DNA of 64,000 nucleotides from assembly GCF_021869535.1 (NCBI RefSeq), contig NW_026262672.1, positions 1,612,001 through 1,676,000 on the forward strand, in the 5' to 3' direction. This document shows positions 5,751-45,035 of this stretch, piece after piece. This DNA comes from Mytilus californianus. Lineage: Eukaryota. Positions within the stretch are counted from its first letter, which is position 1. Each line of letters opens with the position of its first letter. Under the pieces are notes generated by a model. That model was not told the DNA's origin and made no database searches. It worked only from the letters and a program-made list of their open reading frames with translations. The position numbers and the translations under genes were made by a program.

Positions 5751-5759
5751 AAAAATAGA

Positions 5760-9681: not shown

Positions 9682-12600
9682 TTTTTTTTTTATATGAAGG
9701 GGAAAATTCCAACAGCAGTAGTAAAGTATATGCAGTGACATTACGTATCATAGGGTCAATGGTGAAGGAATTAATCAACACGTAGGGTGGGGCACAAAAT
9801 ATATAGTTGATTATAATGCCAATGTAGGGAAATTAATAAGTCCTAAAGGGCCAACTTTAATTTGTCGCAGGCTGTGGACAATTTTGGTAAGGGAAGTTCT
9901 TCTTTTGATAAAGTTGCAAATCAATATTCTGGTTTGAGTAAATTGAAAAGTTGCAGTTTCAATTAATTATGTTTGACTGTGTACATTTAGGTTTAGTTTA
10001 GCAATGTTCTGAAATGGAACATACTTCTTTTTTATAAGTATTGGATATGTTTTATGATGGGTATAGTTGTATAATAATGAAGTTGGAACATTAAATAAGG
10101 TTTTGTATTTAGTCAGTCGGTTATGTCATATTATTTCACTGAGACCCGTTTGTACATCGTTGGTTTTTTTAATCCACTATCTTATATATAAGAGGAACCG
10201 TGGTGAACTTGTTATATTCCACTATTCCAAGTTCCCCCTTCGGTACCCCGAATGTATAAGATAGCACGGTCACTCTTAGTCTAATCGTCACTCGATTGGA
10301 GGTCATAAGTAGAGCATGATCGCTATGTGGATCGAATGCACAAGCGTTGTTGATTGAGCGGTCATTATGCTTTAAAAAATACGTACATGAAATACAAAAA
10401 CACAAAAAAAGGTAAAAAACCAAAACAAGCGACGAAACAAAATTGGAACTAAGGTAGTTAGTTGTCTTATTGAATATTAACCATATTCCTTGCTTTCTGT
10501 GGAGTCATATTAGGGATGATGCAGTATAACAAAGGTACTCGAGATATGCACTTATGATGATAAAGATGTGGTTCATGTCAAAATTTAGGTTAGGCTAGTC
10601 TGGTTTTGCAACAGAAGGTCATTGTACCTGTTTTTTCTTACCGTTTTTAGCAGTGTTCGGATATTACGGGATATGAAAATGATATATTCTGTGGATAACA
10701 ATATAGCTAGTATTTGGTCTACTCGTTTGGTGTTGTAGTTGATATAATTAAAAATACTAGTACTTGTTTTTAATATATGGTAAAATTGCTATAAATAAGC
10801 GATTACATTTCAAACCGATTATGTACCTGGGGATCATTTTTGTAAGTCAGGTTGCTACACAGTCTTTTTGTTTTCGAATACCGAAACAGGTTTTATGTTT
10901 TCAAAACATGATTGGTTGTATTGTCAACCATGAGCATTTGAATTAAAATACAGTTACACCTTAACTTATTTGAACCTTTAGAAATGCTAGTCTTGAAATG
11001 ACGCATGCAGTACTTTGTATTTTCTTTTCGGAACTGAATTACGCATGCAATACATGTATATTGTTACATGTAAAGGCAGAGTGTATGGAAACAGTTGCGA
11101 TCAGGGAATGTAACACAAATGCGAGACAATTAAAACGTTTATTTGGTTGATAGATATCTAAGAACGAGTTAATTGATCGTATTAATTATAGTTCACTTGA
11201 TTCCTTTCACCCCTTTATCAAACCTCTTATGGTTTGTTGAATCCACTATCTTATATATGATAGGAACCGTGGTGAACTTGTAAGATTCCACTATATATTC
11301 AAACAATTATCAACAAATTATTTGTAACTTTTTGTCTTATCAAATTTGTGACTTTATGTCCTGTGACTTTCTGTCCGTTTACCTATACAGGTAAATGAAA
11401 ATAATTTTGTTGTTAGGTATACAGTTTCAATGTAGAAAGGAAATATTTTTATAAAATAAATAATTTTGATGTTCATAGTACGAAGAAGTGAACATTCATA
11501 GTAATACGAAACACTTATCAAAGGTGGTATATAGACCAGATATAACCCTGAATAAGTAAACATTAAATAACAAAAAAAAACATTACAATAGTATCAACAG
11601 GTCAAATTAACAAGTAAGTATGCCTTTTAGTGTTTCTTTGATACATATGACGTGGCTCTGTACTTATACATCTCGTCATTATGTTTTTGTTCCATGACAA
11701 TGTTTGTATTCTTGTCTTTCATTTTAGCTAATGTGCATTGTCTATATGCCTTTCAGTTTCTTCGATACATATGACGTGGCTCTGTTCTTATACATCCCGT
11801 GCTAATGTAAAGTTTTGTATTCTTGTCTTTCACTTTTGCTAATGTGCTTTGTTACATATTTGTTTGTTTTTATAGTGATGTAAGATTATAACACAATGTT
11901 GACGGCTGTATCCGTATTTTTGACAATTATGTCCGTTTGTTTTGCTTTGTTGAAAGATTGGTGATTCAAACAGTTTCTTTTTAGGATAGTTGTCCAGGGC
12001 TGAGTCGTCTACTGTGATTCATATGCCATGTTTTAAGGGAAATGGTTAAAGAATGTTTTAAAAACTCCATACCCAAGGAACAGGGGTGGATTTTACACAG
12101 CAAGTTTTATTATATATTTTTTTAATTAGTAAATTGACAGGACATTTCATATTTTGAAGCAAATATCTGTTAATTACAATATAATGTTCAACATTACCTG
12201 TAATTTTATCTTATTATTTCACTTTCTGTATAGAAAACAATGTAAGAAGTCTGGAAGGCAACAGGACCTATGCAGATTTTATTCCAAAATTATAGCACAA
12301 CCGTCCTGCACAATTCGTAATCCACTGCCTTACAAGATTGCCTCCATCCATTAAACAAATCCCATTGGAAAACCTTTCTGCTGATGGAAATTGGGAATTT
12401 AATGTCCAGGGTGTTGATATAGATAAAGTGTCAATCTGAAAAAAGCAAAATGTTCTTGTATAAACTTAAAGAATCACTTACCATGCAAACACAATCTGTC
12501 AGTGATTCACGCTTTAACAAATTGTAAATAGGAATATTGATTTTATAAATTACAATGATGAGAAAAAAGCATATGAATGATATGGATACTTATATGAGAA

Positions 12601-12962
12601 AAGAGAATCCTGAAATAGTTGTCACTTATTCCTTGGTTATAATGCAGCGGAAGCAAACCACCGTTCGATTTGAATGTTTTAATAATCGTGTAAATTGATC
12701 ATTCCACTATAGAGTTGTTCAGGGCTGAGTCGTCTACTGTCTTTTTATTATTTCATTGTCATTACAAAATTTATTGTATTCATTGTACTGATTGTTGGTT
12801 GCTTAACGTTTAAGAATGACTCAAAAGTTTAAAGCAATAATCTCATAAAGCTAAATACTGTCCACACTAGTCTGTCTTCACTCTTTTGTATTTTCCCCAT
12901 TAGTTTGAACATGCAGTAACGACACCTTACACTTAAGATTACAATTTAAGCTGAATCAGAGT

Positions 12963-13248
12963 AGTAGTAGTAGAATAGGGATAAGAAAACAGTAGAGCAG
13001 GTAGAGCAGCTTATGTAAATATTGTGCTAGTGATGGTGGAATGTTTGTGTCCACGTGTGATACTTTTGACCAAGGTAGAGCAACATTGGTTGGTAACCAG
13101 GTTATGTTTGTCGTCCATTTTGTTTCCACGTTGCAAGGTAGAGCAACATTGGTCGGTAACCAGGGGTATGTTTGTCGTCCATTTTTGTTTCCACGTTGCT
13201 GACTTTTTCAAGGTAGAGCAACATTGGTTGGTAACCAGGGTACGTTTG
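12963..13248 (+). repeat. Left terminal inverted repeat of the Polinton (286 bp matching; degenerate extension to ~13311)
   Basis: Reverse complement of 32724-33009; the mirrored ORF translations in the track are identical across the overlap. Contains three ~63-75-bp internal units starting at 13071, 13134 and 13209. Confidence 0.95.
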
Positions 13249-13611: not shown

Positions 13612-13938
13612 ATGGATTTAGAAACAGACTCGGGATGTTACTTTTCAGACATCCTCCGTTTCAAACCAGCCCATCTGAATATGATGTATTTCACAAATAG
13701 AATGCAAACATATACAAATTGGCCGGAACAGATTAAACAAAAGCCAGAAGATCTAGCTCATAATGGTTTTTTTTACACCGATATAGGAGATAGAGTGACA
13801 TGTTTTTATTGTGACATTACTCTAAAAAAGTGGACTAAAGAAGACGATATCGAAACAGAACATATAAAATGGGATCCAAATTGTTTGTTTGCAAAGATGG
13901 TATCTAGTAAAACCTTGTCCAACATACTTATGAAATAA
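13612..13938 (+). CDS. Single-BIR-domain inhibitor-of-apoptosis-like protein (108 aa)
   Basis: BIR signature R..TY..WP...LA..GFFY...GDRVTCFYC-x16-H-x6-C (CFYC...EH...PNC). No RING domain. Confidence 0.92.
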   Translation: MDLETDSGCYFSDILRFKPAHLNMMYFTNRMQTYTNWPEQIKQKPEDLAHNGFFYTDIGDRVTCFYCDITLKKWTKEDDIETEHIKWDPNCLFAKMVSSKTLSNILMK

Positions 13939-15049: not shown

Positions 15050-16156
15050 ATGAACACACAAGATAGAATAAATGATTTAATATCAAACACATATAAAAAC
15101 ACACATGTAGGTCCCGAAAAAATATACAGAATATTAAAATCCAAAGGAATCACTAATGTTGGACGATCCAGGATAAAAAGACTATTACGAAGTCAAGACA
15201 GTTACACTTTAAGAAAGGAACTCCGTCATTCTTTTCGTCGTGCACGTGTAATTGTATCTGGAATTGATGATCAGTGGGACATGGACCTCGCTGATATGTC
15301 AAACATTGCAAGTGAAAACGGTCAGTTTCGATACCTATTAGTCGTCGTGGATATCTTTTCAAAGTATCTGTGGATTCAGGTTCTGAAAAATAAATCAGCA
15401 AAAGTTGTAGTCGAGGCAATGAAGAAAATTTTAGCTGGTAACAGAAAATGTAAAAAGATTCGAACTGATAAAGGAAAAGAATTTAACAACAACATAATGA
15501 AATCATATCTGAAAAATGAAGGTATACAATATTTCACCACACAGAATTCAGAAACAAAGGCTAACTACGCTGAAAGAGTTATCAAGACTGTGAAAAATAT
15601 GATGTATCGATACTTCACAGAGAGGAGAAATCATAGGTACTTGGATGTACTTCAAGATATTGTTAAAGTATACAATTCTACTCCACATAGAAGCTTGAAC
15701 AATATCCAACCAAAAGACGTCAGCAAAACAAACGAAGCAGATATATGGGCATATATGTATTTAAAACCAAAGAAAATAACATCAAAAAAGCCTCGATCAT
15801 ACCACTTTAAGGCTAATGACTTCGTTCGTATTTCTTACATTTCTATGCTATTTGACCGTTCATATGATGAACATTTCACAAGAGAAATTTTTAAAGTTAG
15901 CCAAAGATTTCGAATGCAGGCTATACCGGTTTATAGAATAAAGGAGTATGATGGAACTTCCATAAAAGGATTATTTTATGAATCAGAGATGGTTAAAGTG
16001 AACAAGGATGAAGATGTTATGTGGTATGTAGAAAAAAAAATTCGAAAACGTAAGAGAAATGGACGGGTTCAGTGGTTAGTTAAGTTTGAAGGGTGGCCAA
16101 ATAAATATAATCAGTGGTTGAATGAAGAGGATATCACAGATCCAAATGACTCCTGA
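15050..16156 (+). CDS. int: Retroviral-like DDE (rve) integrase with C-terminal chromodomain (368 aa)
   Basis: Catalytic D (WDMDLADM), D (IRTDKGKEF) and E (AERVIKTVK); chromodomain WYVEK...WLVKFEGWPNKYNQW. Consistent with the 6-bp TSD. Confidence 0.96.
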   Translation: MNTQDRINDLISNTYKNTHVGPEKIYRILKSKGITNVGRSRIKRLLRSQDSYTLRKELRHSFRRARVIVSGIDDQWDMDLADMSNIASENGQFRYLLVVVDIFSKYLWIQVLKNKSAKVVVEAMKKILAGNRKCKKIRTDKGKEFNNNIMKSYLKNEGIQYFTTQNSETKANYAERVIKTVKNMMYRYFTERRNHRYLDVLQDIVKVYNSTPHRSLNNIQPKDVSKTNEADIWAYMYLKPKKITSKKPRSYHFKANDFVRISYISMLFDRSYDEHFTREIFKVSQRFRMQAIPVYRIKEYDGTSIKGLFYESEMVKVNKDEDVMWYVEKKIRKRKRNGRVQWLVKFEGWPNKYNQWLNEEDITDPNDS

Positions 16157-17060: not shown

Positions 17061-18383
17061 ATGGCTGCTTTATCGTTAGATGGGTTCCAAGAAGCTCAGC
17101 CAAGTGGTTTGGATCTGTTTTCATTACCACCAACACAGACAGCGATTGATTCAGTGTATTATGATGAGCATAGGTCAACAGCACAGCTAACTGGAACTGC
17201 GCCAGTAGAATTTAACATTGCAGCCCAAAATTCACTGGAGTATATAGATTTGAGAAAAACAAAATTATATGTAAAAGCGAGAATAAAACATATCAATGGA
17301 GACAGTCTAAAACCTACTGAGTATGTTGGTCCAGTTAACAATTTTCTACATTCTATGTTCTCACAGATTGATATAACATTACAAAATAAGTTGGTGACAT
17401 CAACTACCACACATTATCCATACAAGGCAATGATACAAACTCTTTTATCTTTTGGATCTGAAGCAAAAAAATCTCAGCTGACTAGCCAGTTATGGAAAAA
17501 AGATCAACCAGGACATTTTGATGATAGTGATGTAGAAAATGGTGGCAATTCTTCCTTATTCGATCGCGCACAGTATTTTACTCAAAGTCAAGTGTGTGAT
17601 TTAGAAGGTCCGTTATTTCATGATTTATGTAGTCTGGACAGATACATGCTGAATCAAGTAGCTATTAATGTTAAACTTTACCGTTCAAGACCTGAGTTTG
17701 CTTTGATGACAAGTGAAAAAGATCCAAATTTTCAAGTCATCATCGATGACATAGTGTTAAAAGTGTGCAAAATACGTTTAAACCCTGCTGTCATTATGGC
17801 ACATGCGCAGAAACTACAAACAACAAATGCTAGATATCCCTATACCAGAACAGAAGTGCGCCTTATTTCTATACCTGCTGGGAGTCTTAGTTTCAATTAC
17901 AATAATTTGTTCAACGGGCTCCGACCGACTCGTTGCGTTATAGCTTTTACAGAGTCCGCTAGTTCTAGTGGTTCATATACGTTATATCCATTCAACTTTC
18001 AACATTTCAACCTTAGTCAAATAACGCTCAAACTGAACCAAGTTCCTGTAGGTGGGAATATTATGCAGTTAAACTATGGAGCCACGAGTCGAACTATACT
18101 ACCTGCTTTTAATAGTATGTTTGAAGTGACTAACAAGTGGATGAGAGACAGTGGAAATCAGTTGAGTAGAAATGATATAGTAGGAGGAAATGCTTTATAT
18201 TGTTTTGAAATAGAACCAAATTTCAGCGACGAGGGACAGTACTTAAACTTAGTGAAACAAGGAACTTGTTCTCTAGAAGTCAATTTCAATGCACCACTGC
18301 CGAAAGCGTCCACGTGTGTTGTGTATGCAGAGTTTCCAGCTTATTTTGAAATAAATTTAGAAAGAAACATCATTTTAGAATGA
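17061..18383 (+). CDS. Major capsid protein (double jelly-roll, Polinton PY/hexon-like), 440 aa
   Basis: Polinton MCP motifs LDLFSLPPTQTAI, YIDLRKTKLYVK, PVNNFLHSMFSQIDI, YPYKAMIQTLL, LEGPLFHDL, ARYPY, YPFNFQHF. Confidence 0.93.
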   Translation: MAALSLDGFQEAQPSGLDLFSLPPTQTAIDSVYYDEHRSTAQLTGTAPVEFNIAAQNSLEYIDLRKTKLYVKARIKHINGDSLKPTEYVGPVNNFLHSMFSQIDITLQNKLVTSTTTHYPYKAMIQTLLSFGSEAKKSQLTSQLWKKDQPGHFDDSDVENGGNSSLFDRAQYFTQSQVCDLEGPLFHDLCSLDRYMLNQVAINVKLYRSRPEFALMTSEKDPNFQVIIDDIVLKVCKIRLNPAVIMAHAQKLQTTNARYPYTRTEVRLISIPAGSLSFNYNNLFNGLRPTRCVIAFTESASSSGSYTLYPFNFQHFNLSQITLKLNQVPVGGNIMQLNYGATSRTILPAFNSMFEVTNKWMRDSGNQLSRNDIVGGNALYCFEIEPNFSDEGQYLNLVKQGTCSLEVNFNAPLPKASTCVVYAEFPAYFEINLERNIILE

Positions 18384-18892
18384 ATACTTACCAGCTCAAG
18401 TGTGCCATTGTTTCAGACGTTGACTTACAACGATCTGTTCTTGGTGTATTCTCATCTGATGAACTGTCTCAAGTTCACCTACTACCAGGAATGGGTGTGA
18501 TAGCCAATACAGATGTCGCAGGCTTACCAGGAAGACATTGGGTAGCATTTTTCTGTAATAGAAAGAACAGTCTTGAAGTATTTGACTCTTTTGGGTATTC
18601 AGAAAAAGAACTCACTGTTTATTTTAACAAATTCATGCGGAATTATGCATACATACAATCAAACGAGAAAAGACTACAAGGTGATGACACAGTTGTGTGT
18701 GGACAATATTGTTTGTTTTATTTAATGTGTCGTGTGAGAGGATTTACCATGCAACAGATAACAGATGTGTTTTCAGAAGACTATCAATTGAATGACAATT
18801 TTGTGTACAGTTTTATAGACAATCGGTTTCATTGCTGTGTGAACAATGTGTGTAATGTTGTGAATCAATCTTGTATCAAAATAAAAAATTAA
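18380..18892 (+). CDS. Adenain-like cysteine protease (170 aa)
   Basis: Catalytic H (NTD..GLPGRHW), D (FDSFG) and Q/C (LQ.....CGQYC). The start overlaps the MCP stop (ATGA). Confidence 0.93.
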   Translation: MNTYQLKCAIVSDVDLQRSVLGVFSSDELSQVHLLPGMGVIANTDVAGLPGRHWVAFFCNRKNSLEVFDSFGYSEKELTVYFNKFMRNYAYIQSNEKRLQGDDTVVCGQYCLFYLMCRVRGFTMQQITDVFSEDYQLNDNFVYSFIDNRFHCCVNNVCNVVNQSCIKIKN

Positions 18893-18990
18893 TGCTTATA
18901 TGTTATTGTTGGTGTTGTTGTTGCCTCTCTTTTTTTTTACATATAAAACAGTTTGTCTCTCAGCTATTTTTATTATTTCACTTGAACAGT

Positions 18991-19662
18991 ATGGTTGACT
19001 GGTGGGAGAAGGAAAGTTTGCTCAAATTTCAGAGTCCAACATCAATATTCATTGTTGGTCCGTCAAATTCAGGAAAAACAATGTATACCAAAAACCTTCT
19101 TGAAAATGCAGATGGTATGTTTCAAGTACCACCGTCGAAGATATTTTACTGTTACAGTATTTGGCAGTCAGTTTTCGATGAAATGAAATCAGCAATACCA
19201 AACATTGAATTTTTTCAAGGTTTCCCCCATATGGATGTTTTATCAGAATGGGGGACTTTACAAGGGCATAAGGTTCTTGTTTTAGATGACCTGATGGTGG
19301 AATCTGCAGATAGTAAAGAACTGGTTCATCTCTTAACTGTAGGAATTCACCATAATTCAATCACTTTGATTCAGATTCTACATAACTTGTATTGTAAAGG
19401 TAAAGCCATGAGAACAGCCTCCCTCAATTGCCATTACTTTGTTTTATTTCGGAATTATAGAGATCAGTTACAAATTCAAACTCTTGGTAGGCAGATTTTT
19501 CCCGGACAGTCTAAATACTTTTTAGATGCATACAAGAAGGCGACATCTGTAGCCTATCGCCCATTAATTATTGATTTAAATCCACATACAGACAAAACAT
19601 ATCAGTTGACAACAGATCGTGGAGTTGGACAGACACCTATCGTATATCACTCTGCAGAATGA
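18991..19662 (+). CDS. A32/FtsK-like genome-packaging ATPase (223 aa from M at 18991)
   Basis: Walker A GPSNSGKT, Walker B VLVLDDLM, and downstream HHNSIT / RTASLNCHY / RDQLQI motifs. The ORF-track start at 18871 is non-ATG and low-complexity. Confidence 0.94.
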   Translation: MVDWWEKESLLKFQSPTSIFIVGPSNSGKTMYTKNLLENADGMFQVPPSKIFYCYSIWQSVFDEMKSAIPNIEFFQGFPHMDVLSEWGTLQGHKVLVLDDLMVESADSKELVHLLTVGIHHNSITLIQILHNLYCKGKAMRTASLNCHYFVLFRNYRDQLQIQTLGRQIFPGQSKYFLDAYKKATSVAYRPLIIDLNPHTDKTYQLTTDRGVGQTPIVYHSAE

Positions 19663-20281: not shown

Positions 20282-20327
20282 TTGAGGAAATTAGGTAGCT
20301 GTTATCATTTTGTGTAAAGTGAAAAGC

Positions 20328-23300
20328 ATGGCTCACCGCGGTGTTCATACCAATGATTTACATTTTAACGAATCTGATGATGGTATGTTGGTGAAGGCAG
20401 CCATAGAGGTTGAGAATAAACTCAAACGTAAGAAATCATGTGCTGAAAATGTTGATGTCAAAAGACCAAAGTTAAATTGTGATATTTGTGATAAAACTTT
20501 CAAATACAACAGAAATTTGAACAGACATATGAATTCACATTTTAACAGAATTCAGTGTTTAGCGTGTGGGAAATCGTTTACGCAAAAACATAATTTAGTC
20601 AAACATGGTAATAAGTGTTCTGGACAGCGCACAATAAACAAACGAGATAAACAATTATCTAAGCAACTTACATGTAGACACTGTGATGTCTCCTTTGATG
20701 ATGTTGATTCTTTATTCACCCATGTTGCCAACCATCATCCGTTAAACCAAACAGGAGGTAGAATGCCTAAAACGGAGGAGCCAGTTGTCAGTCAGATAAA
20801 ACGTAAACGGTTTCGTTTTAAGAAAAGCGCCATTAACAAATCAGTGAATCGTGTAGACCTTATGCCTATTGGTGATGAAAAATATGATTTATTACGTTTT
20901 TTGGCTAATACGAAAACTGATGTTGAAGAAATAATAGTATCTCAGCAAAAGAAACAAAAAAATGTCAAATGGTATGTAAATGCTCGAGTGAAGATGGTTC
21001 GAGATATTGATGATGGACAACAAGAAAAGGCACACCCACATTTCCGCAGCAAAAGTTACATATCTCTTCAGAATGAGAGTAATGATCATAATTTAAATGA
21101 AGCTTTCCAAACGATTAACAGAGTAATGGAAGAATTTATCAACAAGGGATCTAACTGGATATTGAATAAAGTTATATGCCTCGAAGTACATACTTTACCA
21201 TACTCACCCATAGCTGGTTCAAATTATATGGAATTACCATACAAAATTAAGGCCACTGGTGGAATTATCAACATTAGAAATGATGACCAAAAGTGTTTCC
21301 TATGGTCTGTACTGGCAGCCCTACATCCGATGGAATATAATCCATATCGGAAGTCACATTATACGGCACACGAAAATGAATTGAACATGAACGATATTGA
21401 ATATCCTGTGTCTTTAACAAAAATGGAGAAATTTGAGAAACAAAACAATATTTCAATCAATGTTTTTGGCTTTGAAAACGAAGAAGTGTTCCCACTATAT
21501 TTAACAAAGTTAGAAAATGTAGATAGGGAGATCGATTTATTGTATTTATCACAGAACGGGGAAACTCACTACTGTTGGATCAAAAATTTAGATCGTTTCC
21601 TTGGATCAATGACTAAATTTCACACCAAACGGTTTTACTGTAGAAGATGTCTTCACGGATTCATAAGACAAGACTTATTAAATGAACACAGACTATATTG
21701 TAATAAGTTTGATTTTCAAAAAGTGACTTATCCAAAAGAAGGAGAAGCCATTTTAGAATTTAGAGACTTTCATAAACAAATGCGTGTTCCTTTTGTCATC
21801 TATGCAGACTTTGAATGCTTTGCAAAAAAGATGGATACTTGTCAACCAGACCCAAATCAATCGTCAACAACACATAAAACAAAATTTGTTCCATGTGGTT
21901 ACTCCTACGTTGTGGTCAGTTCAAATGATAGATATTCCAAGCCAGCCGTTGTATACAGAGGAGAGAACGCAGTCGAACACTTTTTTGAAAATATATTTAC
22001 AGAGGAAGAATACATAGATGATATATTGAGGAACATTTATGAGGAGTTAATTATGAGTGTGGAAACCGAAACGCAATTTCAAAATGCTACAAACTGTTAT
22101 GTATGCAATCAACCATTTTCAGGCAAAATAATCAAAGTTCGTGACCACGACCATTTAGGTATAAACGAAGATAACGAATCACCAAAGTATAGCAATTACA
22201 GAGGGGCAGCCTGTCAGAGATGCAACTTGATGTTGAAAAATCCAAATTTCATTCCGGTCTATTTTCATAATTTGCGGAACTTTGATGCACACCTTTTGCT
22301 GTCGGAAGCTGGTAAATTCAAGGACAAAAAATTAACATGTATACCAAACAATATGGAGAAATATGTGTCCTTTTCTGTTGGACAACTGAGGTTTTTAGAC
22401 ACATACCAGTGCATGAGTAGCTCTTTGGAGACGTTAATTGCTAATTTAGCGGCAGACGGTTTTAAAAATTTCAAACAATTTCGAAAAGCTTTCCCCAATG
22501 ACGAACACGCTAAACTTTTGCTACAGAAAAACGAATACTGTTATGATTATGTGAATTGTTCTGAAAGATTTGAAGAGACAGCTCTCCCTTCAAAAGCAGC
22601 TTTTTATAATTCCTTAACCAAAGAAGCTATTTCTGATGAAAAGTATGAACACGCTCAAAAGGTCTGGAACACGTTCAATATGAAAACCTTAGGGGATTTT
22701 CACAATTTGTATGTATTAACAGATACGCTACTCTTAGCAGATGTTTTCGAACGATTCCGTGACATGACTCTTAAATATTACAAGTTGGATGCTAGTCACT
22801 TTTTCACGAGTCCAGGTTTAGCATGGCAAGCAGCATTGAAAATGAGCGGTGTCTGCCTGGATTTAATAACTGATCCCCTCATGTACAACATGATAGAGCT
22901 TGGAACACGAGGTGGGGTCAGTATGGTTACCAAAAAATACAGTCGAGCTAATCATCAATATGTTGACGACTTTAATGAATCAGATGTGAAAAAACACATC
23001 ATGTATCTAGATGCTAACAATTTGTACGGTTGGGCAATGTCTCAACCATTGCCTTCTGGTTTTTTCCATTTTTTAAATGAAGATGAAATTAGTCATTTTG
23101 AGTTACAGAAAGTCGAGTCAGACGCAAAAGAAGGCTACATTTTAGAAGTAGACATAGAATATCCTGAACATCTCCACAACAAACATAACGATTATCCTCT
23201 GGCACCCGAACATCTACTCATTGAAGACAAAGATCTATCGAAATACAGTACTGATTTATGGGGAAAGTTAAATTCTGTGAAGAATGCAAATGGTGTGGAA

Positions 23301-25235
23301 AAAGTGAAACCTAGGATTAAAACCCGAAAATTAATTCCAACTCTGAAGAAAAAGACAAACTATGTGGTGCATTATCAAAATTTACAACTTTATACAGAAC
23401 TTGGAATGAAAATAACTAAAATACATAGAGTATTAGGATTTCAACAAAAGGCATGGCTTAAAACCTACATAGAATTCAACACCAACATGAGAAAACAGGC
23501 AAACAACGACTTTGAGAAGGACTTTTTCAAACTGATGTGTAATAGGTATGTTTCTCGTTTTTTTTTTTTTTTATATAGATTAGACCGTTGGTTTTCTCGT
23601 TTGAATGGTTTTACACTTTTGGGGCTCTTTATAGCTTGTTGTTCGGTGTGAGCCAAGGCTCCGTGTTGAAGGCCGTACATTAGCCTATTATGGTTTACTT
23701 TTTTTTTTAAATTGTTATTTGAATGGAGAGTTGTCTCATTGGCACTCACACCACATCTTCCTATATCTATGTTATTTTTAAATGTGTAAGATTTTAAAGT
23801 GTTGTCAAGATCTCGAGTTTGCTTGTTGTCTCATTGTCGCATTACCCACATTGATTTAATTATGTTTTGTGGTTTTTGTGTCAGCTTCTAGTACTTATCT
23901 AAAAGTATTCCTACTTTTTCAGTGTTTTTGGTAAATGTATGGAAAATTTGCGTGCTAGGATGAATCTAAGACTAATCAATTCAGCCTCGGAAGAAAAACT
24001 AAAAAAGTTAGTAGCTCAGCCGTCGTTTCTATGCTGCCAAATTTTCAATGAAGACCTCGTTGGAGTACACAACCAACAGATCAACCTAACTCTCAATAAA
24101 CCCATCTATGCCGGACAAGCTATTTTAGACCTTTCAAAGAGACTGATGTATGAATTCCATTACAAGGTGATGAAGCCTCAGTACGGTGACAAGATCAACT
24201 TGCTGTTTACAGATACAGGTATGATATTTTTTTGTTTGTTTGTTTGTTAAAATAAAAGCCATTGTTTCTTTAAATTTCTAATATTTCTCATTGTTTTCTC
24301 CTTTGTATAAGTAGAATAAAGGAAGAGATTCCTCTTTGGTATTGTGCTAACATTTCTGAATTCATTTTAGATTCGTTGTGTTATGAGATTCTGACTGATG
24401 ATGTATATGAAGACATGAAACCTATCAAAGACCTATTCGATACCTCCAACTACGGCTCATTCAACAAAACGAAACATCTCTTTTCCAGCAAATATAAGAA
24501 AGTCGTTGGGAAATTTAAAGATGAGCTTGGTGGTGAGTTCTTTCAAACAAACATTTTATTTTTCTCTCTCTAAAGTTTAACATAAATTTTCTTTCAAATT
24601 TTCCTTTTTCTTGTGAATTTTCTGTAAAATTTTCCTTTTTCTTTTGAATTTTCTGTAAAATTTTCCTTTTTCTTTTGAATTTTCTGTAAAATTTTCCTTT
24701 TTCTTTAGAATTTTCTGTAAAATTTTCCTTTTTCTTTAGAATTTTCTGTTAAATTTTCCTTTTTCTTTAGAATTTTCTGTTAAATTTTCCTTTTTCTTGT
24801 GAAATTTATGTTAAATTTTCCTTTTTCATGTGAATTTTCTGTTAAATTATTATTAAATATTGTCTTTCTCATGTGCCTCAAAAAATCTTTTCAGGTGTTC
24901 CTTTAAAAGAATTCGTTGGCTTGAGACCTAAAATGTACAGCCTTTTGTATAACCAGACCTCTACAGAAGGTATCACATGCGAAAAGGAAAAAAAAGTGGC
25001 GAAAGGCATTTCAAAAACTGAAATAAAACAGACTCTCCGACATGAAATGTATAAGACATGTTTGAATGAAGAAACTACGACCACCAATTCAATGACGTGC
25101 ATTAGAAGTAAAAATCATGAACTTTTCATGGATACCGTTGTGAAAAAAGGACTGTGTAGTTTTGATGATAAACGTTACTGGAAGAACCCAATTGAAAGCT
25201 ATGCCTATGGACATTATAAGATAGACACATATTAG
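20328..25235 (+). CDS. polB: Protein-primed family B DNA polymerase, 4 exons (20328-23545, 23923-24218, 24371-24532, 24895-25235), 1338 aa; N-terminal C2H2 fingers and an endonuclease-VII-like insert
   Basis: Exonuclease motifs YADFEC and FHNLRNFD; motif A YLDANNLYG. Splicing restores KLMCNSVFGKCMENLR (motif B), FTDTDSL (motif C) and KFKDELGGVPLKEFVGLRPKMYS. Spliced length is 4017 nt = 1339 codons with no internal stop. Confidence 0.93.
23546..23922 (+). other. polB intron 1 (GT-AG, phase 2), contains a host dispersed-repeat fragment
   Basis: Donor AG|GTATGT, acceptor cctactttttcAG|T; joins AG+T = Ser in KLMCN-S-VFGK. Confidence 0.92.
24219..24370 (+). other. polB intron 2 (GT-AG, phase 1), splitting the catalytic DTDS motif
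   Basis: Donor ACAG|GTATGA, acceptor ttcattttAG|AT; G+AT = second Asp of FTDTDSL. Confidence 0.93.
24533..24894 (+). other. polB intron 3 (GT-AG, phase 1), contains a 31-bp minisatellite
   Basis: Donor G|GTGAGT, acceptor atcttttcAG|GT; restores DELGGVPLKEFVGLRPK. Confidence 0.9.
24597..24846 (+). repeat. Tandem minisatellite, ~8 x 31 bp (AAATTTTCCTTTTTCTTKWGAATTTTCTGTW)
   Basis: Directly visible periodic repeat inside polB intron 3. Confidence 0.92.
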
Positions 25236-25369: not shown

Positions 25370-27141
25370 TCACATCGATTGGAAAAAGGCTCCCATTTCC
25401 TCCTCAGAGAGATCATATAAATTGTTTTGCACAGGGGAAATCTGTTCATATTTTGTATTCTTCCCAGACCACTGTGGGTTTAATTCTTCACGTATCGGTC
25501 TCTTTGCGGCCATCCTCACCGGAATCATATTTCCTTTGCTCCACATCGGGTCTGTTATAGTTTGAAGTGGAGTGGTAGTTGACGTCTCGTTTTCATATAT
25601 TATTGTTAGAGGTGCCTGCAATAATAAAAATGAAATATTTAAATAAATAAACCAGAGAGAAATGAAATACTTTCAGTGTTGCTTATCTTTTTTTTTTTAA
25701 GGACAAAAGGTTGTTTGCAAGTTCAATTCTATACTTAAAAAACAAGTATTGCTTTGTTCGCATTTAAGTGTATCAAGTTAAGAATACATGGTGATTCTTG
25801 AGAAGAACAAAAAAAAACCCACCCTCTATTGCAAGACTTACCTATTGTATGTATTGTTAACTTGTTCTCACCCTGAGCATGTATGAAATATTTGCCACTG
25901 GACGTTAACCAACCAACAATCAATCATGATTCTTGAACATATTTAAACTCTACATTAATAAATGTATACTTACGGAAGGTGTTGGTGGTGGTTGCTTAAC
26001 GTCCAGTGGCAAATATTTCATACATGTTCAGGGTGAGAACAAGTTCAGAATACATGGTGATTCTTGAGAAGAAGAAAAAAAAACCCACCCTCTATTGCAA
26101 GACTTACCTATTGTATGTATTGTTAACTTGTTCTCACCCTGAACATGTATGAAATATTTGCCACTGGACGTTAAGCAACCAACAATCAATCATGATTCTT
26201 GAACATATTTAAACTCTACATTAATAAATGTATACTTACGGAAGGTGTTGGTGGTGGTGGCGGTGCATAAACCGGCGCTACATTTTCTTTAAGTACAACC
26301 TGCTCCTGTGGCTGGGAGAGCGGCTAAAACATGAAAAATAAAATAAAACTCAAACTCAAATGTTATGAAGAAAGTTTTATACTTGCGAGAGGTGTTGGTG
26401 GTGTGCATATTGTTTTTCGTTCATTATTTTGTACATAAATTAGGTTGTTATCTTTTTTCTCCCCTCGGATGTTTGTTTTACATTCATCATTTTGAAGCTA
26501 TTTATAGCTGACTATGAGGTATGGGTTTTGCTTATTGTTGATGGTCGCAAGGTGACCAAAAGTTGACAATTTCTGTATCATTTGGTCTCTTGTGAAGAGT
26601 TATCTTATTAACAATCATACCACATCTTCGTTTTATGTTATTCAATTGTTGCATTAAATTAGTTAAAATAAAAGGCAAATGTGAACACCGATATCTCCCC
26701 TAACAAAAGCGAGGTAGATAGATAAACAGAAAGATAAACGGTAATAGACAATACTTAAAACCTTCCTGTTGTTTACGGTAAGCGCATACAAACAGAGAAA
26801 AAAAAACACCTCAAAGGGTATAATCTTTAATTTTCCTCGGTTTTTAAAGAAAACTCCTACATGTGAACCTCGTGTAAAAACAAAAAGAAAGAAAATAGTC
26901 TTACCTGTGGAAAGTATGCAGTTAGGGACTCTAGGTGCCCCCTCAGTGTAAACAGATCATCCAGCTCGTCTAGCCCTAAATTCAGCTTCATTGATCCATT
27001 TGACGCAGCCAAGTCTAAATAAAAGAGTCCTCTAGCGGACTTTTTATAGGTAAGCACTTTCCCTCTCCCGAATTGAGTTTTGTATTCCGTTCTACCAGTG
27101 GAAGTAATAATTTGACTAAATTGAACATTTTCGGCTGCCAT
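25370..27141 (-). CDS. Three-exon Polinton accessory gene (27141-26905, 26323-26240, 25615-25370), ~188 aa; N-terminal beta-rich domain possibly PC4/ssDNA-binding-like, Pro-rich linker
   Basis: Donors CAG|GTAAGA (26904) and TCC|GTAAGT (26239); acceptors gttttAG (26324) and ttattgcAG (25616). All junctions are phase 0 and the ORF stays open. The domain call is only a by-eye resemblance. Confidence 0.72.
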
Positions 27142-27786: not shown

Positions 27787-29026
27787 ATGGTGCCCGCTAA
27801 GTGTTTGTTGTTGTTGAGTATTGTTGTATGTAATGGCCAAGTGCATGACCTTAATATAAGGAAATGCAGAAGTGTGGTTGATGAAAGCTACGAGGTAGTG
27901 GAGCTGCAGTGCCTGTATGAGGGGGAAGGCAGCTACATTTTCAATGGGCCGACTTCAGTGAAGAAGATTACCCTGGACAGACTGGCGGGTTCCAGTACAT
28001 TAATGACTTTTGGCCAGCAGTTAGAAAAAGTAGCCATCAAAACATGCACCATAGACAATTGTTGCCAGGCCATTTCAGCAACCCCTAGCACGGAAGTGCA
28101 GATTGCGGATAAAGTTTGTGTAAGATGCTATTACGTAACTTGTTTTCAACATCCGCCATTTTTATTGTTTACAAAAAATTGACACCTACTTTATGAAAGA
28201 CAAATTCCCTTTATTTTCTTTTGAAAGTATAACAATATAAGAAAAGAAATATTTGTTAGCATAATTTTAATTGTATTTCTATTAAACAGATTTGTGTTAA
28301 AAACTATAAATATTAAATTTGATAACTGTCTATAAATATTATTGTTTTTGTTTACAGTCACTGGAAGACCTTGTTTCCTCTACTGGTGTGGTTGAGACCT
28401 CTCCTCATACGGAGGGGGGTTCTCCTGACTCCTCAACAGAATGGTCTCAAAGCGCTCCAACATCAGCAGTGTACGAGCACAGCCAAATGTCCAGCACTCT
28501 CCCTGACCATCAACAGGTGGGTTTTCACCTATAGGGCAAAGAGAATCCCTACTTAACATAACCATTGCATTGTGGTGATGTATTCTAAAAAACATGAAAA
28601 CACTGCTGTTAAAATTAACGTAAACAATTTTGAAAGTACTTATTTTCACTATTTTAGACATTTATACTTATAAATTTCTCATGCTTTAAATTCAGCTAAA
28701 GCTAAATGTGTATTGATTGTAACATGTAGTAGGGTGTGGATTAGGTTATGTTATTTTATTTGTGTACATGTAGTTTATTATTTAATTTTTTATTTTAGAC
28801 TACTACAGAAAATGAGACGAACTCAACAACACCGTGGATAGTAGCAACCGTCACCACTTTAACAGGTAGCTTAAAAGTTTATATAATTTTTCTTGGAGTA
28901 ATTTTGTTTCTTTTAATTGTCTTAATTTTGGTGTTCTTATTAAAAAAGTATTACTATCAATCAGACTACATTCCAGTTAAGAACGATGATTCTTTATATG
29001 TTGAAATGGATACCATAACTAGTTAA
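27787..29026 (+). CDS. Spliced type I membrane glycoprotein, isoform A (exons 27787-28119, 28358-28516, 28799-29026; 239 aa)
   Basis: Signal peptide MVPAKCLLLLSIVVCNG, 6-Cys ectodomain, Ser/Thr-rich stalk with NET/NST sequons, TM VYIIFLGVILFLLIVLILVFLL followed by KK, tail YYYQSDYIPVKNDDSLYVEMDTITS. Phase-0 GT-AG junctions at 28120/28357 and 28517/28798. Confidence 0.82.
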
Positions 29027-29045
29027 ATTATTTCTTTTCTTGTAG

Positions 29046-29170
29046 TACTTCTGGTGATAGCTCTCATTTGTTTGGGGAAGAAATGTTTGAGGAATAGTAG
29101 GGGAGGGTTAATTGAGCATTGTCTTCCTCTACAGGAGATTCCTACTGCCCCTAAATATAAGGACTATTAG
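29046..29170 (+). CDS. Alternative terminal exon B of the membrane glycoprotein gene (VLLVIALICLGKKCLRNSRGGLIEHCLPLQEIPTAPKYKDY*)
   Basis: Acceptor tttcttttcttgtAG (29045); phase 1 from the donor at 28865/28866; completes the TM WIVATVTTLT-VLLVIALICL-GKK. Confidence 0.68.
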
Positions 29171-29276
29171 GATAAAAGAAATAATTATTAATTTAAATTG
29201 TAATTTCAATATCACTGCTTTTAACTCTTTTTTTTCAATATCACTGCTTTTAACTCTTTTTTTTTTTTACTTACAG

Positions 29277-29398
29277 TGATATTCTTTCTAATAGGTGGAT
29301 TTATTGTTTGGAGGAAAAGACATTCTCAAAATATTTCAAACTCTGAAGATGAACTCTATAATAAAGCCTGGTACAATTTAAGTAGTGACAATTTATAA
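29277..29398 (+). CDS. Alternative terminal exon C (VIFFLIGGFIVWRKRHSQNISNSEDELYNKAWYNLSSDNL*)
   Basis: Long poly-T acceptor ttttttttacttacAG (29276); phase 1; completes the TM and is followed by the stop-transfer WRKRH. Confidence 0.68.
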
Positions 29399-29432
29399 AA
29401 TTTGTATTTTTTTTTTTATTTTCTTCTTGTAG

Positions 29433-29545
29433 AGCAATTTCAAGTTCTAATCTTTACCATGATTAGTGTATTAGTGGTTTTAAACCGTATCCATAGACTT
29501 TTGTTAAATGCAATACCAGCTATTAGAAACTTCATCCCCCTGTAA
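29433..29545 (+). CDS. Alternative terminal exon D ((EQFQ)VLIFTMISVLVVLNRIHRLLLNAIPAIRNFIPL*)
   Basis: Acceptors at 29432 (ttttcttcttgtAG) and 29444, both giving the same phase-1 frame; hydrophobic run followed by NRIHR. Confidence 0.55.
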
Positions 29546-29778
29546 GACAGCTTATTAACCCTCCTCAACATCAACCACCACAACAAGCAGCAGTCCAACC
29601 TATACCACCTGCAGTACACCAGGAAGTCATCCTACCCTTACCAGCACCTCCACTCATTTTAAGAAGAAGCACCAGACAGTCCATACCACCCAACAGGCTT
29701 AATTTGTGATTAATTTGTGTATTATGTTTTTTTTTTGTTTGTTTTCAAACCAAACTTCTATATAATTTGTGTAATTAA

Positions 29779-30043
29779 GATGTACCTAACACTACAGGGG
29801 GATAACTCTGTAAAATCAGCTAAATGTTAATTATGATATGTATTTAAGGGCATTGTAATAAGCTTCTCAATGGTTGAAATTAGTGTTTGTTAAACTGTTA
29901 TATACCCAGTGTAATTTTTATAAAGAAATGGTTGCTTCAAATATTTTGAAATTTTTATCAAAGGTTCAAAATAAATACTTTGTTAAAATTTTATGAAAAC
30001 TCAACAAACCAAATTTATTTTAGGTAAGGTGTTGGATACCACC
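29779..30043. mobile_element. Non-autonomous DNA transposon (TTAA TSD, imperfect TIR; Kolobok/piggyBac-like) inside the Polinton
   Basis: TTAA at 29775-29778 and 30044-30047; ends GATGTACCTAACAC versus reverse complement GGTGGTATCCAACAC. Confidence 0.55.
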
Positions 30044-32723: not shown

Positions 32724-33009
32724 CAAACGTACCCTGGTTACCAACCAATGTTGCTCTACCTTGAAAAAGTCAGCAACGTGGAAACAAAAATGGACGACAA
32801 ACATACCCCTGGTTACCGACCAATGTTGCTCTACCTTGCAACGTGGAAACAAAATGGACGACAAACATAACCTGGTTACCAACCAATGTTGCTCTACCTT
32901 GGTCAAAAGTATCACACGTGGACACAAACATTCCACCATCACTAGCACAATATTTACATAAGCTGCTCTACCTGCTCTACTGTTTTCTTATCCCTATTCT
33001 ACTACTACT
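32724..33009 (-). repeat. Right terminal inverted repeat of the Polinton (degenerate extension to ~32657)
   Basis: Mirror of 12963-13248; ends ...TTCTACTACTACT followed by TSD CAGAGT. Confidence 0.95.
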
Positions 33010-34279
33010 CAGAGTTGCTGAGAGTTACTATATATTTGTTAGTATCATCAACTTACTATAAGCCTCAAGTCATATATAAGCTATTATGGATCTTAGCTAC
33101 TCATGTTTTTGACTTTTGTCAGAATGATTGAATGATTGACGGTTGCTTAACGTCCAGTGTTATTTCAATTTTTGTTCAATCACTTTAATAATTTCAAATG
33201 CAAATTTTCATTTTTCTCAATCAAATATATAGTTTTCAAGTTTAAATCAACAGATGTTAGTCAGTGAACTGAATATACGATAATGATTATGTATTACAGT
33301 GATGCTAATCAGGTAAAATCATATGTATTGGTTATTTAAATATAAGTATGTAAAACTATTGTCAGTTTAAACTCATTTGATTTTTTCCCTGGTCAAGTGA
33401 GGCTGTATAAATACAGGGGTCCCCAAGTATGCGACCTGGGCTACTTAGGTATCAGGAAATTGAATAAAAATATTTGTTATCGTTAAAACTAAACAAAAAA
33501 AGTCCAGTGTCAAATATTTCATGCATATTCAGGGCGAAAACAAATTAACAATAAATACAATAGGTCGGTTCTGTAATAGAGGCGTCCGGGATTAAGTTCG
33601 GAGAAGACTTTTTGTCAGATATTCGGAATCCTAGAGTATTCTCTATGAAGTAACAATATCAATTTTGACCGCTAACCTCTAATTTTCTTTTCATTATTTT
33701 CATTATAAGTGTATAAACTAAGCTCTGTCGTTATCTAATTCTGAATTAATTATTTCGAATCAAGAACCAAAATAAATCAGCAACTCTCTTGATGACTACT
33801 CGGCAGTCTTGCGAAGCATTTGTTACTTTTACTGAAAGAAAGTATTTTGTTTTTATTGTGATGGATTACGTTTTAATTTTTAATTTATTATCGCCAAACT
33901 ATGGAGTTATGGCAAATGTGTAATAGGACTAAATTCACATTTACTTCAGTCTACTAGCAACTACAAGAATATTTGCTTGAAAACTAGCAACGACAAAATC
34001 TTCAGTACTAGCAATGACAAAATTATTTACTTAAGTACTAACAACGACAAACTATTTTTATTTACCTATTTGACATTTATGAAATTTTCATCTACTAGTT
34101 TGTATTGTTTTATATGCTTGTCTAGGAGAATATTGTTCTACACCTATGATTTTATATTGGTTTGATTCTGTTGCTTATAGTAGTGATACATCGTAATTAT
34201 ATAACTGTGGTATGTTCTGCGCTTGCCACTAGGACGTGTGTTGTCGTCTGGTTCCTGATCAGCTTTGAGTGTATTTTTT

Positions 34280-40873: not shown

Positions 40874-41297
40874 ATTGATTGATTGATTGTTGGTTGCTTA
40901 ACGTCCAGTGGCAAATATTTCATGCATATTCAGGACGAGAAAAAGTTCACAATAAATTCAATAAGTAGGTTTTGTAATAGATTAAGGGATCAAAGTCGGA
41001 GAAATTTAGACTGCCACGGGAAATGAGGGTACATTGGATAGGGACAGAAATATAGCCTTGTAACAGGCCACCTACGGACCCCTCAAAGAGTTGTTGCAAG
41101 GGTTCTTAACGTGCAAAGAACGTGGCACTCTCTTTACACGAGGCATCGGATTTAACGTCCCCATTCTGACCGGACGTGACTGCGAACTTGTACATCCCGC
41201 ACAGCCAAACGGACGCCCCACTTTAGCGAGGGTTTTACCGCCGGTCGGAGGAAGACCAATGGTGACCATATTTCTATTCCCCAGTCACCCTTGGGGG
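40874..41297 (-). mobile_element. SINE copy
   Basis: Full length; no TSD seen. Confidence 0.87.
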
Positions 41298-41689
41298 TCA
41301 CCTGTCTGAGGAACAAGAGAAAAGGAGGGGGGTTGAGGAGGGAACCGTGCGTTTTGGGGAGCATATGAACTAAGTATACATTACATGGATTGATAGCACT
41401 ATCTTCCCGGTCAACCATTTAAGTGTGTTCTTGGCCACCATTATGGCCAATAATGACGTGGCACATCCGCTTTAAACCCAACGTTATTACCAAAGGACAT
41501 GTTCCCTTCTTCTAACCGGAAACTTTAATGTCGCCGGAGCAGGTGACATTCCACTCAAACGTATGCATTTGCAGGTAACTCAAAGGAAAAGAAGAAATAA
41601 TTAAACTCACCATATATACCAGGACTAAATTTTGTAAATAAAAAGTTGAAATCATGAATGTTCCAAAAGCTGATTTATTTATTTTACCG

Positions 41690-42724: not shown

Positions 42725-44297
42725 GATGAATGATATTGCCTAATTCATATAGATCTCTAGTTAGATCTAAACTAGATTATGGCTCAATAGTGTATGGCTC
42801 TGCAAGGAAGTCCTACATACTGATTCTCGATGCTGTTTATCACCAGGGTTTGCGTCTCTGTCTTGGCGCCTTTAAAACCTCACCAGTTGAGAGTCTGTAT
42901 GTAGAGGCTGATGAGCATTCACTCTCCAATAGATGCTTGAAGCTTGGACTTCAATACGCTGTCAAGCTAAAAGCATATCCAGAAAATCCTGCCTACGACT
43001 GTGTTTTTAATCCAATTTACGAAGATGTATTTGCAAAACATGAAAATAAAATTCCTCCATTAGGAATTCGTTCAAAACCACATTTAATCACTTTTGCTTT
43101 GAAATCTGTCGCTCAAGTTGAAACTTGCAAATGTCCTCCCTGGTAACTTCCCAACCCTAAAATGATTTTCGATCTCCGTAAATACAAAAAAAAAAATGAA
43201 ACAAACCATCTATTAATTCAACAACATTTTGCTGAAATTAAGGCAAATTATTCAGATTTTTCAACTGTTTATACATATGGATCGAAGGATGGTAACCGAG
43301 TTGCATGTGCTGCTATCCTTGATGAAAGAGCTGCGACTCTCCGTTTGTCATCTGACGCATCCATATTTACTGCTGAAGCACAGGCAATAATTTTGGCTTT
43401 GAAATTTATTGCTACTTCAGACAAATCCAAATTTATAATCTGTTCTGATTCACTTTCATGCTTACAAGCTATACAACATTCTAAAATTATAAACCCGATA
43501 ATTCTCAAGATTTTATCTGTAATGATGAATTTGAACATTTTTCATAAAGAGATAATTTTTCTATGGGCACCGAGTCATGTTGGAATCCATGGAAACACGG
43601 TTGTAGACCAGGAGGCAAAAAATGCCCTGGATGACCCTTTATCTAACTGTGATATACCATATACCGATTTTAGATCTAATATTAGAGAATATGTTTTTAA
43701 TATTTTGAAAAATGAATGGAGTAAAAAAGATGATAATAAATTACATGAAATTAAACCTAATTTAGGTAAACCTTTCAATAATTTTATATGCAGAAAAGAT
43801 CAGTGTGTTATATCTAGATGTCGTATTGGTCATACTAGAATAACACACGAGTATCTTTTTAAAAATGAAGATGAACCACAATGTATACCTTGCAACTGCA
43901 AGTATACTATTAAACATGTTTTAATTAATTGTATGGACTTTGCTGATATTCGTAGGAAGCATTTCAATGTCAACAATATGTATGATTTATTTAACAGTGT
44001 TCCAATTACAAATATTGTTTCATTCTTGAAGGAAGTTGGAATATATCATAAAATATAAAAATGTTGTATAAATGTAAACTGATTTTAATTTTTATCACGT
44101 TATCTTAGTGTTTGAATTTTATTTGTAAATAAACAATTTGCTTGAGACTTGAATTTTAGTTTATTGAAGGACCTTTTGTCTGATTTTATAACTATACTGT
44201 AAATTGTAAAAATATTTGAATAAGCTCTCGCCGCGATATAGCATTTTTGTGCTCATGCAGCGTAAAGCAAATACCAATCAATCAATCAATCAATCAA
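42725..44297 (+). mobile_element. 5'-truncated I/Nimb-clade LINE (RT thumb, RNase H, C-terminal CCHC, 3' UTR ending in (AATC)n)
   Basis: Motifs SLVRSKLDYG, GAFKTSPVESLYVEA, RNase H YTyGSK / AEAQAI / CSDSLS / WAPSHVGIHGN, and CIPCNCKYTIKH. Broken by a stop at 43144-43146; tail at ~44275-44297. Confidence 0.88.
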
Positions 44298-45035
44298 TTC
44301 AGACAAAAGGTCCTTTAATAAACTAAAATTCAAGTCTAAACCAAATTGTTTATTTACAAATAAAAATCAAACACTAAGATAACGTGACCAAAATTAAAAT
44401 CATTTGAAACTTATTCATTTTTATATTTTATAATATATTCCAACTGCCTTCAAGAATGAAACAATATTCATAATTGGAACACTATTAAATAAATCATACA
44501 TATTATTGACATTGAAATGCTTCCTGCAAATATCAGCAAAGTCAATACAATTTATTAAAACATGTTTAATAGTATACTTGCAGTTGCAAGGTATACATTG
44601 TGGATCATCTTCATTTTTAAGAAGATACCCGTGTGTTATTCTAGTATGACAAATACGACATCTAGAAATAACACACTGATCTTTTCTGCACATAAAAAAA
44701 TTGAAAGGTTTACCTAATTTCTGTTTAATTTCATGTAATTTATTATCATCTTTTTGACTCCATTAATTTTTCAACATATTAAAAACATATTCTCTAATAT
44801 TACATCTAAAATCAGTATATGGTATATTTCAGTTAGATAAAGGGTAATCCAGGGCATTTTCTGCTTCCTGGTCTAGAACTGGGTTTCCATGGATTCCAAC
44901 ATGACTCGGTACCCATAGAAGAAATATCTCTCTATGAAGAATTTTCAAATTCCTGATTACATATAAAATCTTGAGAATTATCGGGTTTTTAATTTTGGTA
45001 TGATGTATAGCTTGTAAGCATGAAAGTGAAGCAGA
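44298..45035 (-). mobile_element. Second, inverted and diverged copy of the same LINE 3' region
   Basis: The ORF at 44421-44693 is nearly identical to the C-terminus of 43162-44058; it abuts the first copy's tail. Confidence 0.88.

Follow-up and report, generated by a model that had tools for sequence, protein, structure and literature searches.

The adenovirus E3 region encodes small type I membrane proteins that arise by alternative splicing and carry sorting motifs in their short tails, but E3 splicing selects different open reading frames (ORFs), and so different proteins, and does not fit one ectodomain with different tails. Exon swaps of this latter kind are known from Drosophila Dscam1 (TM1/TM2), CEACAM1 (long/short tails) and CD46 (CYT-1/CYT-2), in which they alter sorting or signalling. 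To our knowledge, the accessory genes of Polinton/Maverick elements are almost unstudied. Here we analyse one such gene in a 64,000-nucleotide stretch of the Mytilus californianus genome (NCBI RefSeq assembly GCF_021869535.1, contig NW_026262672.1, positions 1,612,001 to 1,676,000 of the forward strand), hereafter called the window and numbered from its first letter. The gene is located in a Polinton and encodes a type I membrane glycoprotein in which a single ectodomain is followed by four candidate membrane and tail endings, which we call A to D.

Polintons are abundant in bivalve genomes (bioRxiv 10.1101/2025.04.19.649669). Among their described proteins, MFUS-1 is a herpesvirus glycoprotein B (gB)-like fusogen of nematode Mavericks, a type I protein with a signal peptide and a single membrane helix (bioRxiv 10.1101/2022.07.12.499685). 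The mussel protein resembles MFUS-1 in being a type I membrane glycoprotein borne by a Maverick/Polinton. The two differ in that MFUS-1 has 866 amino acids (aa) and a class III fusogen fold, whereas the folded domain of the mussel protein spans about 90 aa (111 aa with the signal peptide) and gives no gB-like match; alternative endings, moreover, are not described for MFUS-1. A survey of adintoviruses reports membrane-active accessory proteins (PMC8502044), but a spliced surface glycoprotein with exchangeable tails is described neither there nor in the nematode Maverick study (bioRxiv 10.1101/2022.07.12.499685). A literature search of limited scope turned up neither this family nor alternative endings in any Polinton gene. 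The most plausible working analogues are host genes: Dscam1, CEACAM1 and CD46 share the principle of one ectodomain combined with varied membrane or tail segments. They have no homology to the mussel gene, and they use mutually exclusive or cassette exons, whereas the mussel gene uses nested 3′ splice sites in its terminal region and lies inside a mobile, virus-like element.

Our favoured reading, to which we give a probability of roughly 65%, is that this is an accessory type I glycoprotein of a recent Polinton, with a composite terminal exon built from nested alternative 3′ splice sites. Comparison of sequences suggests that at least two of the endings are in use, B and D both being annotated, with C a probable and A a possible addition. 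The gene and its parts are as follows.

27787–29709, plus strand: glycoprotein gene, from the ATG to the stop of the family-type long tail; equals RefSeq LOC127732314
27787–28119, plus strand: exon 1, signal peptide and Cys-containing, beta-rich ectodomain, 111 aa; starts with the ATG, phase 0, donor TGT/GTAAGA
28358–28516, plus strand: exon 2, Ser/Thr-rich stalk, 53 aa; acceptor behind a T-rich tract, donor CAG/GTGGGT; identical to the RefSeq protein
28799–28865, plus strand: exon 3, two N-glycosylation sequons and the first half of the membrane helix; phase-1 donor CAG/GTAGCT
28866–29026, plus strand: ending A, read-through of that donor; 22-aa hydrophobic helix, KK, 27-aa Tyr-rich acidic tail
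29046–29170, plus strand: ending B, 41 aa; second half of the helix, GKK, tail
29204–29261, plus strand: 29-nt segment duplicated in perfect tandem immediately upstream of acceptor C, with TTAAC (branch-point-like) and a run of T in either copy
29277–29398, plus strand: ending C, 40 aa; second half of the helix, WRKR, tail
29433–29709, plus strand: terminal exon D; acidic junction residue, helix, NRIHR, P/Q-rich tail ending in basic RRSxR...PxRL
29970–29975, plus strand: candidate shared poly(A) signal, the first AATAAA past D

An annotation made from the sequence before this analysis (the first-pass annotation) had proposed three common exons leading to a phase-1 donor at 28865/28866, where the membrane helix starts, and this model holds base for base. 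Exons 1 to 3 followed by B translate exactly (100%) to XP_052097338.1, the M. californianus 'uncharacterized protein LOC127732314' (P0050; P numbers denote the database proteins discussed here), and the RefSeq model of the gene uses the 28865 donor with acceptor B. Isoform translations were made by joining the predicted exons as they stand; similarity searches used the exons individually, and the full-length queries were the database proteins P0003 and P0050 and the alignment A2. The 186 aa of the common part comprise a signal-peptide-like start, the Cys-containing domain, the stalk, two N-x-S/T sequons and the first half of the helix; the earlier description as a membrane glycoprotein is supported, and the protein is of type I. 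Ectodomain cysteines stand at residues 27, 42, 87, 92, 93 and 111, and Ser and Thr together make up 40% of residues 112–176. Compared with the usual metazoan consensus, the 28865 donor (CAG/GTAGCT) is weak.

All four continuations described in the first-pass annotation, each with a hydrophobic run, a basic cluster (KK, GKK, WRKR or NRIHR) and a short tail, are present, and the spacing it gave, with every stop 19–106 nt before the next acceptor, is borne out by gaps of 19, 106 and 34 nt. Splicing from the 28865 donor would remove introns of 180 nt (to B), 411 nt (to C) or 567 nt (to D). The helix of A is complete in itself, with a mean hydropathy of 3.67, while B and C each finish the helix begun in exon 3 with 10–12 residues, followed by the basic cluster and a tail of about 27 aa. 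Pyrimidine-tract scores of acceptors B, C and D range from 0.76 to 0.88, with C the highest (0.88), and the 29-nt duplication upstream of C could strengthen that acceptor further. For D, two acceptors had been offered (29432/29444). In every relative the junction residue is E, D or K, and this mostly acidic position identifies 29433 as the start of the exon; the alternative at 29445, with a tract score of 0.59, is rejected. Neither AATAAA nor ATTAAA occurs in a usable position after the stops of A, B or C, the matches at 28939 and 29360 falling within coding parts, so a single shared site after D, near 29970, is preferred.

Such a series of endings might be suspected of being an accident of AT-rich sequence, in which T-rich codons encode hydrophobic residues and A-rich codons encode Lys; the region has a G+C content of only 32%, and the pattern was picked after it had been seen. 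Controls with real and shuffled sequence refute this idea. Of 254 AG sites with a strong tract on the two strands of the window, only B and C lead in phase 1 to a hydrophobic run and a basic cluster within an ORF of 25–60 aa. When the tract filter is dropped, 11 of all 6520 AG sites pass, and 6 of these 11 fall within 28866–29650. An A-type ending (at least 18 hydrophobic aa, then two K/R, then a tail of 15–45 aa) is found once in the six frames of the window, and it is A itself. Shuffling, which the first-pass annotation had itself named as one possible refutation, did not reproduce the pattern: 2000 shuffles that preserved the dinucleotides of the region yielded 0.037 endings on average and in no case two, while the real sequence has 4. 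As B and D are also annotated isoforms in a sister species, we regard an accidental origin as having next to no chance of being right. The pattern of endings is not due to chance.

Annotation-level evidence that one donor serves two acceptors comes from Mytilus edulis. The RefSeq gene of this species has two isoforms, X1 (XP_071150089.1) of B type and X2 (XP_071150090.1) of D type, which differ only in their ending. Between the window and M. edulis, 76 of 93 residues are identical in mature exon 1 and 38 of 51 in the stalk encoded by exon 2; for exon 3 the figure is 20–22 of 21–22 aa, depending on the copy. Ending B matches isoform X1 at 36 of 41 positions and has the same length. Ending C is in frame in M. 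edulis ab initio models, with 35/36 identical residues in P0043 and 33/36 in P0049, and the first 36 aa of D have 34–35 identical residues in M. edulis copies. At 88–97% identity, B, C and D have thus been preserved no less well than the ectodomain. All three are in frame in M. edulis copies.

The relatives also reveal something that the first-pass annotation had missed, namely that D normally continues into a long P/Q-rich tail and is the ancestral ending. This long form is read continuously in nine close relatives as an exon with PW[IV]V, an acidic junction, a helix and the P/Q-rich tail. The same architecture is seen in M. coruscus (P0004, P0006), is shared by P0044 and recurs more loosely in the ark clam Tegillarca (P0021), so that on the sequences compared D is the ending common to M. 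coruscus and Tegillarca. The P/Q-rich tail, whose basic terminus RRSxR...PxRL is kept from Mytilus to Tegillarca, has no match in Pfam. The window encodes this tail immediately behind the D helix, yet shifted into another frame, a single change that sets it apart from the relatives; D here therefore yields a truncated product, and B is the best intact product of this copy. Two further proteins, P0051 (M. galloprovincialis) and P0054 (M. edulis), join a different N-terminal ectodomain to exons 2/3 and the D tail. That domain has a dibasic RNKR site, a hydrophobic Gly-rich stretch and coiled-coil-like sequence; it is absent from the window, and Pfam gave no match that would bear out its fusion-protein look. 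The arrangement may be either a chimeric annotation or a real module swap.

Taken together, the favoured reading would work as follows. The protein would consist of a signal peptide, a Cys-stabilised domain of about 90 aa, a mucin-like stalk, a membrane helix and a cytoplasmic tail, and the weak phase-1 donor inside the helix would be joined to acceptor B, C or D. Use of acceptor D (29433) would produce the ancestral form, whose P/Q-rich tail is long. Splicing to B (29046), and probably also to C (29277), would complete the helix and add a basic cluster and a different short tail, whereas failure to splice would yield A, which has a full helix of its own. A single downstream poly(A) site would serve all forms. 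The purpose may be to give one ligand-binding ectodomain varied sorting or signalling in the secretory pathway or at the cell surface. That C and A are used, that all forms share one poly(A) site and that the purpose is of this kind are our inferences. A role at the host-cell surface or in the secretory pathway is favoured over one in the virion, given the small size of the protein and a fold unlike that of a fusogen.

Several points weigh against this account. What RefSeq and the ab initio annotation offer are predicted models, and in M. californianus B may have been selected solely because the long D form is interrupted. Ending A is found in none of the database proteins retrieved and so has no support outside the window; the first-pass annotation had four tails being made, and while B and D are annotated and C is kept in frame, the number four is not borne out. 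B and C are documented only in close relatives, at about 80–90% protein identity, so shared ancestry of recent date could account for part of their retention, and no endings like B, C or A were seen in the M. coruscus or Tegillarca subfamilies. Function, finally, is inferred throughout.

A first alternative is that only the ancestral D and B are used, with C and A being unused leftovers, for example decaying duplicates or captured exon fragments in the last intron. The RefSeq isoforms do show B and D only, A is the ending lacking database counterparts, and C is found only in ab initio models, where it is used otherwise than the first-pass annotation had proposed. Yet C has the best tract of the three acceptors and the duplicated branch-point-like segment, and it keeps its frame, its length and 33–35 of 36 residues in copies from M. 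edulis that have diverged by about 18–25% in the ectodomain. A and C are also each unique in the window under the null scans. We therefore consider it unlikely that C and A are both leftovers, though this is an alternative to be taken seriously.

The ab initio models raise a different alternative, in which B and C are internal exons, spliced to D from weak donors before their stops to make proteins with two helices. Two M. edulis models have this form, P0045 running from exon 3 through part of B to D and P0043 from exon 3 through C to D, and they too count against the favoured reading. Both are ab initio models, however, from annotation that is prone to lengthening ORFs, whereas two RefSeq models (P0050, P0053) end at the stop of B itself. 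Neither B nor C contains a GT[AG]AG donor, and with a second helix the conserved tail would come to lie on the opposite side of the membrane. We judge this arrangement very improbable and retain the composite terminal exon, in which each ending is terminal.

A stronger version of the favoured reading is that regulated choice of 3′ splice site, combined with intron retention, places four different anchors and tails on one ectodomain, and that long and short forms differ in role. The ancestral long-tail and derived short-tail forms might then serve, for example, surface display, internal retention or signalling. We put this forward tentatively and would sooner expect it to fail than to hold. If it were true, this would be the first Polinton accessory gene described as having diversified isoforms, and it would indicate that Polintons manage the host-cell surface as true viruses do. 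Even short of this, the isoforms, if expressed, would offer a concrete handle on what Polintons do to the host cell. Practical value is modest, as the gene is already in RefSeq as an uncharacterised protein, with two endings present as separate M. edulis isoforms. Those entries, which concern the same gene, list at most two endings, with neither A nor C among them, and give no function and no link to Polintons.

The ectodomain itself belongs to a bivalve family. A search of 1.84 billion cluster representatives with the exon-1 domain gave 30 relatives at E ≤ 1e-3, and those with a named source are from Mytilus edulis, M. coruscus, M. galloprovincialis, M. trossulus, M. californianus and the ark clam Tegillarca granosa. 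Most are ORFs of 110–150 aa that stop a few residues past the last Cys; they are read-throughs of the same donor, and the exon boundary is therefore conserved. A profile search with alignment A2 for further spliced relatives, covering 8000 candidates, added P0052 alone. The first-pass annotation had described a six-Cys ectodomain. Six cysteines are indeed present, but only four are conserved across the family, C42 and C93 being invariant and C27 and C111 occurring in at least 90% of members.

An AlphaFold2 model of exon 1, built from a 28-sequence alignment, has a mean predicted local distance difference test score (pLDDT) of 87 and a predicted template-modelling score (pTM) of 0.74. It consists of short beta strands, and the ectodomain models as a small beta-solenoid-like domain, not an immunoglobulin (Ig)-like one. 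Neither PDB nor BFVD yielded a Foldseek match to this model at E ≤ 0.001, and gB was not matched in the PDB fold search. Weak matches were to leucine-rich repeat (LRR) and L-domain structures in PDB and to FNIP-repeat solenoids, the best being a mavirus FNIP-repeat protein (E 0.03); a Gaeavirus fragment in BFVD aligned with template-modelling scores of 0.51/0.70 across 78 columns. The FNIP and LRR repeat proteins of virophages and giant viruses are thus the best, though weak, fold matches of the model, but they are cytoplasmic, whereas the mussel domain would be secreted and Cys-bridged, and it gives no Pfam sequence signal. Pfam, including its E3 families, returned nothing for exons 1 and 2 or for full-length relatives at E ≤ 1, nor for 28 family members at E ≤ 0.1, and a PDB profile search with the family alignment returned no match. 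As modelled, the ectodomain is a bivalve-restricted family with a confident structure prediction and no known fold relatives.

These searches bear on the likeness to adenovirus E3 that the first-pass annotation had drawn, for which the relevant comparators are the E3 CR1-type glycoproteins and gp19K. In its strong form, the protein would be a homologue or close functional counterpart of the E3 immunomodulatory proteins and would signal through an immunoreceptor tyrosine-based inhibitory motif (ITIM) in tail A. The comparison has some appeal: both are type I membrane glycoproteins, both belong to the adenovirus–Polinton lineage, and both involve alternative splicing. An ORF with a BIR domain shows, moreover, that the element carries host-interaction genes. 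The motifs named in tail A, SDYIPV for the ITIM and YVEM for YxxM, are real strings; the ITIM pattern [SIVL]xYxx[IVL] occurs once in the tail. By chance, 29 aa of the six-frame translation of the window would be expected to contain 0.09 matches to the ITIM pattern and 0.03 to YxxM. The patterns are short, however, and lie in the one ending unsupported outside the window, so signalling through them is not supported. The Pfam and PDB profile searches and the Foldseek comparisons with PDB and viral models are all devoid of E3 matches, with no adenovirus protein among the PDB or BFVD fold matches listed, and the model is solenoid-like, not Ig-like as an E3 domain would be. With no relation to E3 in sequence or fold, and with one ectodomain given varied anchors and tails, the likeness is at most a loose analogy, and homology or close functional equivalence to E3 is highly unlikely.

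The first-pass annotation had also called the gene Polinton-encoded, and here it was right: the gene lies between terminal inverted repeats that are flanked by a target-site duplication. The element comprises the following features.

12957–12962: target-site duplication CAGAGT (6 bp), left copy
12963–33009, plus strand: Polinton/Maverick element, 20,047 bp, with inverted repeats, target duplication and integrase, protease and ATPase ORFs
12963–13248: left terminal inverted repeat, 286 nt, 100% complementary to 32724–33009
13612–13938, plus strand: BIR (IAP-like) domain ORF, an accessory gene; Pfam BIR E 1.4e-23
15050–16156, plus strand: integrase, rve core and chromodomain; Pfam rve E 8.5e-11, above cut-off, and Chromo E 9.8e-5, below cut-off
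17061–18383, plus strand: 440-aa ORF in the major-capsid position, a candidate by gene order alone
18380–18892, plus strand: adenain-like cysteine protease; Pfam Peptidase_C5 E 3.4e-5, 24.0 bits (cut-off 21.3)
18871–19662, plus strand: packaging ATPase, A32-like; Pfam Pox_A32 E 3.9e-5, 23.7 bits (cut-off 22.8, just exceeded)
20310–25235, plus strand: probable protein-primed DNA polymerase B with N-terminal C2H2 zinc fingers; from the ORF list, motifs read by eye
26860–27141, minus strand: 94-aa ORF divergent from the glycoprotein gene
32724–33009: right terminal inverted repeat, 286 nt, perfect partner of the left repeat
33010–33015: target-site duplication CAGAGT (6 bp), right copy

The perfect inverted repeats and the intact target duplication point to a recent insertion. 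Whether the gene serves the element is a separate matter, as it could be a host gene taken up by one Polinton lineage as an intron-containing genomic copy, with no role in the element's life cycle. It has at least three spliceosomal introns, whereas the integrase, the capsid-position ORF, the protease and the ATPase are each a single ORF, and its family is restricted to bivalves. On the other hand, M. edulis models are spread over at least six contigs, and part of the stalk exon is in another frame than in the window and the RefSeq models, with one change each, in at least four copies from that species (P0003, P0042, P0043, P0049); such a multi-copy gene with decayed copies is what would be expected of an element gene. 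In one relative, P0016, the exon-1 domain also adjoins a homologue of the ORF that neighbours it in the window. No single-copy host paralogue was identified, although the genomic context of the relatives was not examined. Uptake of a host gene with no role in the element seems to us improbable, if not negligibly so. If the isoforms are expressed, the favoured reading of an accessory gene would show that a Polinton whose core genes are compact and free of introns can carry one dependent on host-type alternative splicing.

Several features of the element and its surroundings deserve mention. The BIR ORF, just inside the left repeat, is a second accessory gene of host-interaction type in the same Polinton, and the left terminal inverted repeat itself contains a tandem repeat of about 75 nt. 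The 440-aa ORF at the capsid position has no match in Pfam or PDB. The frame of the polymerase candidate is made up of four ORF pieces with three interruptions, which are either introns or damage; its zinc fingers were found by the searches, but neither Pfam nor PDB gave a polymerase match, and the polymerase motifs are a reading by eye. The neighbour in P0016 is a homologue of the 94-aa minus-strand ORF at 26860–27141, fused in frame to the exon-1 domain. A PC4-like identity considered for this ORF is unsupported, with no relatives in Pfam or PDB. The window holds no second copy of the glycoprotein gene.

Two repeats lie inside the element, between the polymerase pieces and the glycoprotein gene: a tandem array of 8.5 units of 31 nt (24585–24848) and a 266-nt repeat of 1.8 units with 98% matches (25774–26258). 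Outside the element (1–12900 and 33100–64000) there are many repeats of 250–420 nt with 94–98% identity in both orientations, for example at 3680–4101, 40876–41300, 48808–49229 and 56659–57080, which resemble a host family of the miniature inverted-repeat transposable element type. An inverted pair of 620 nt is present at 43444–45035.

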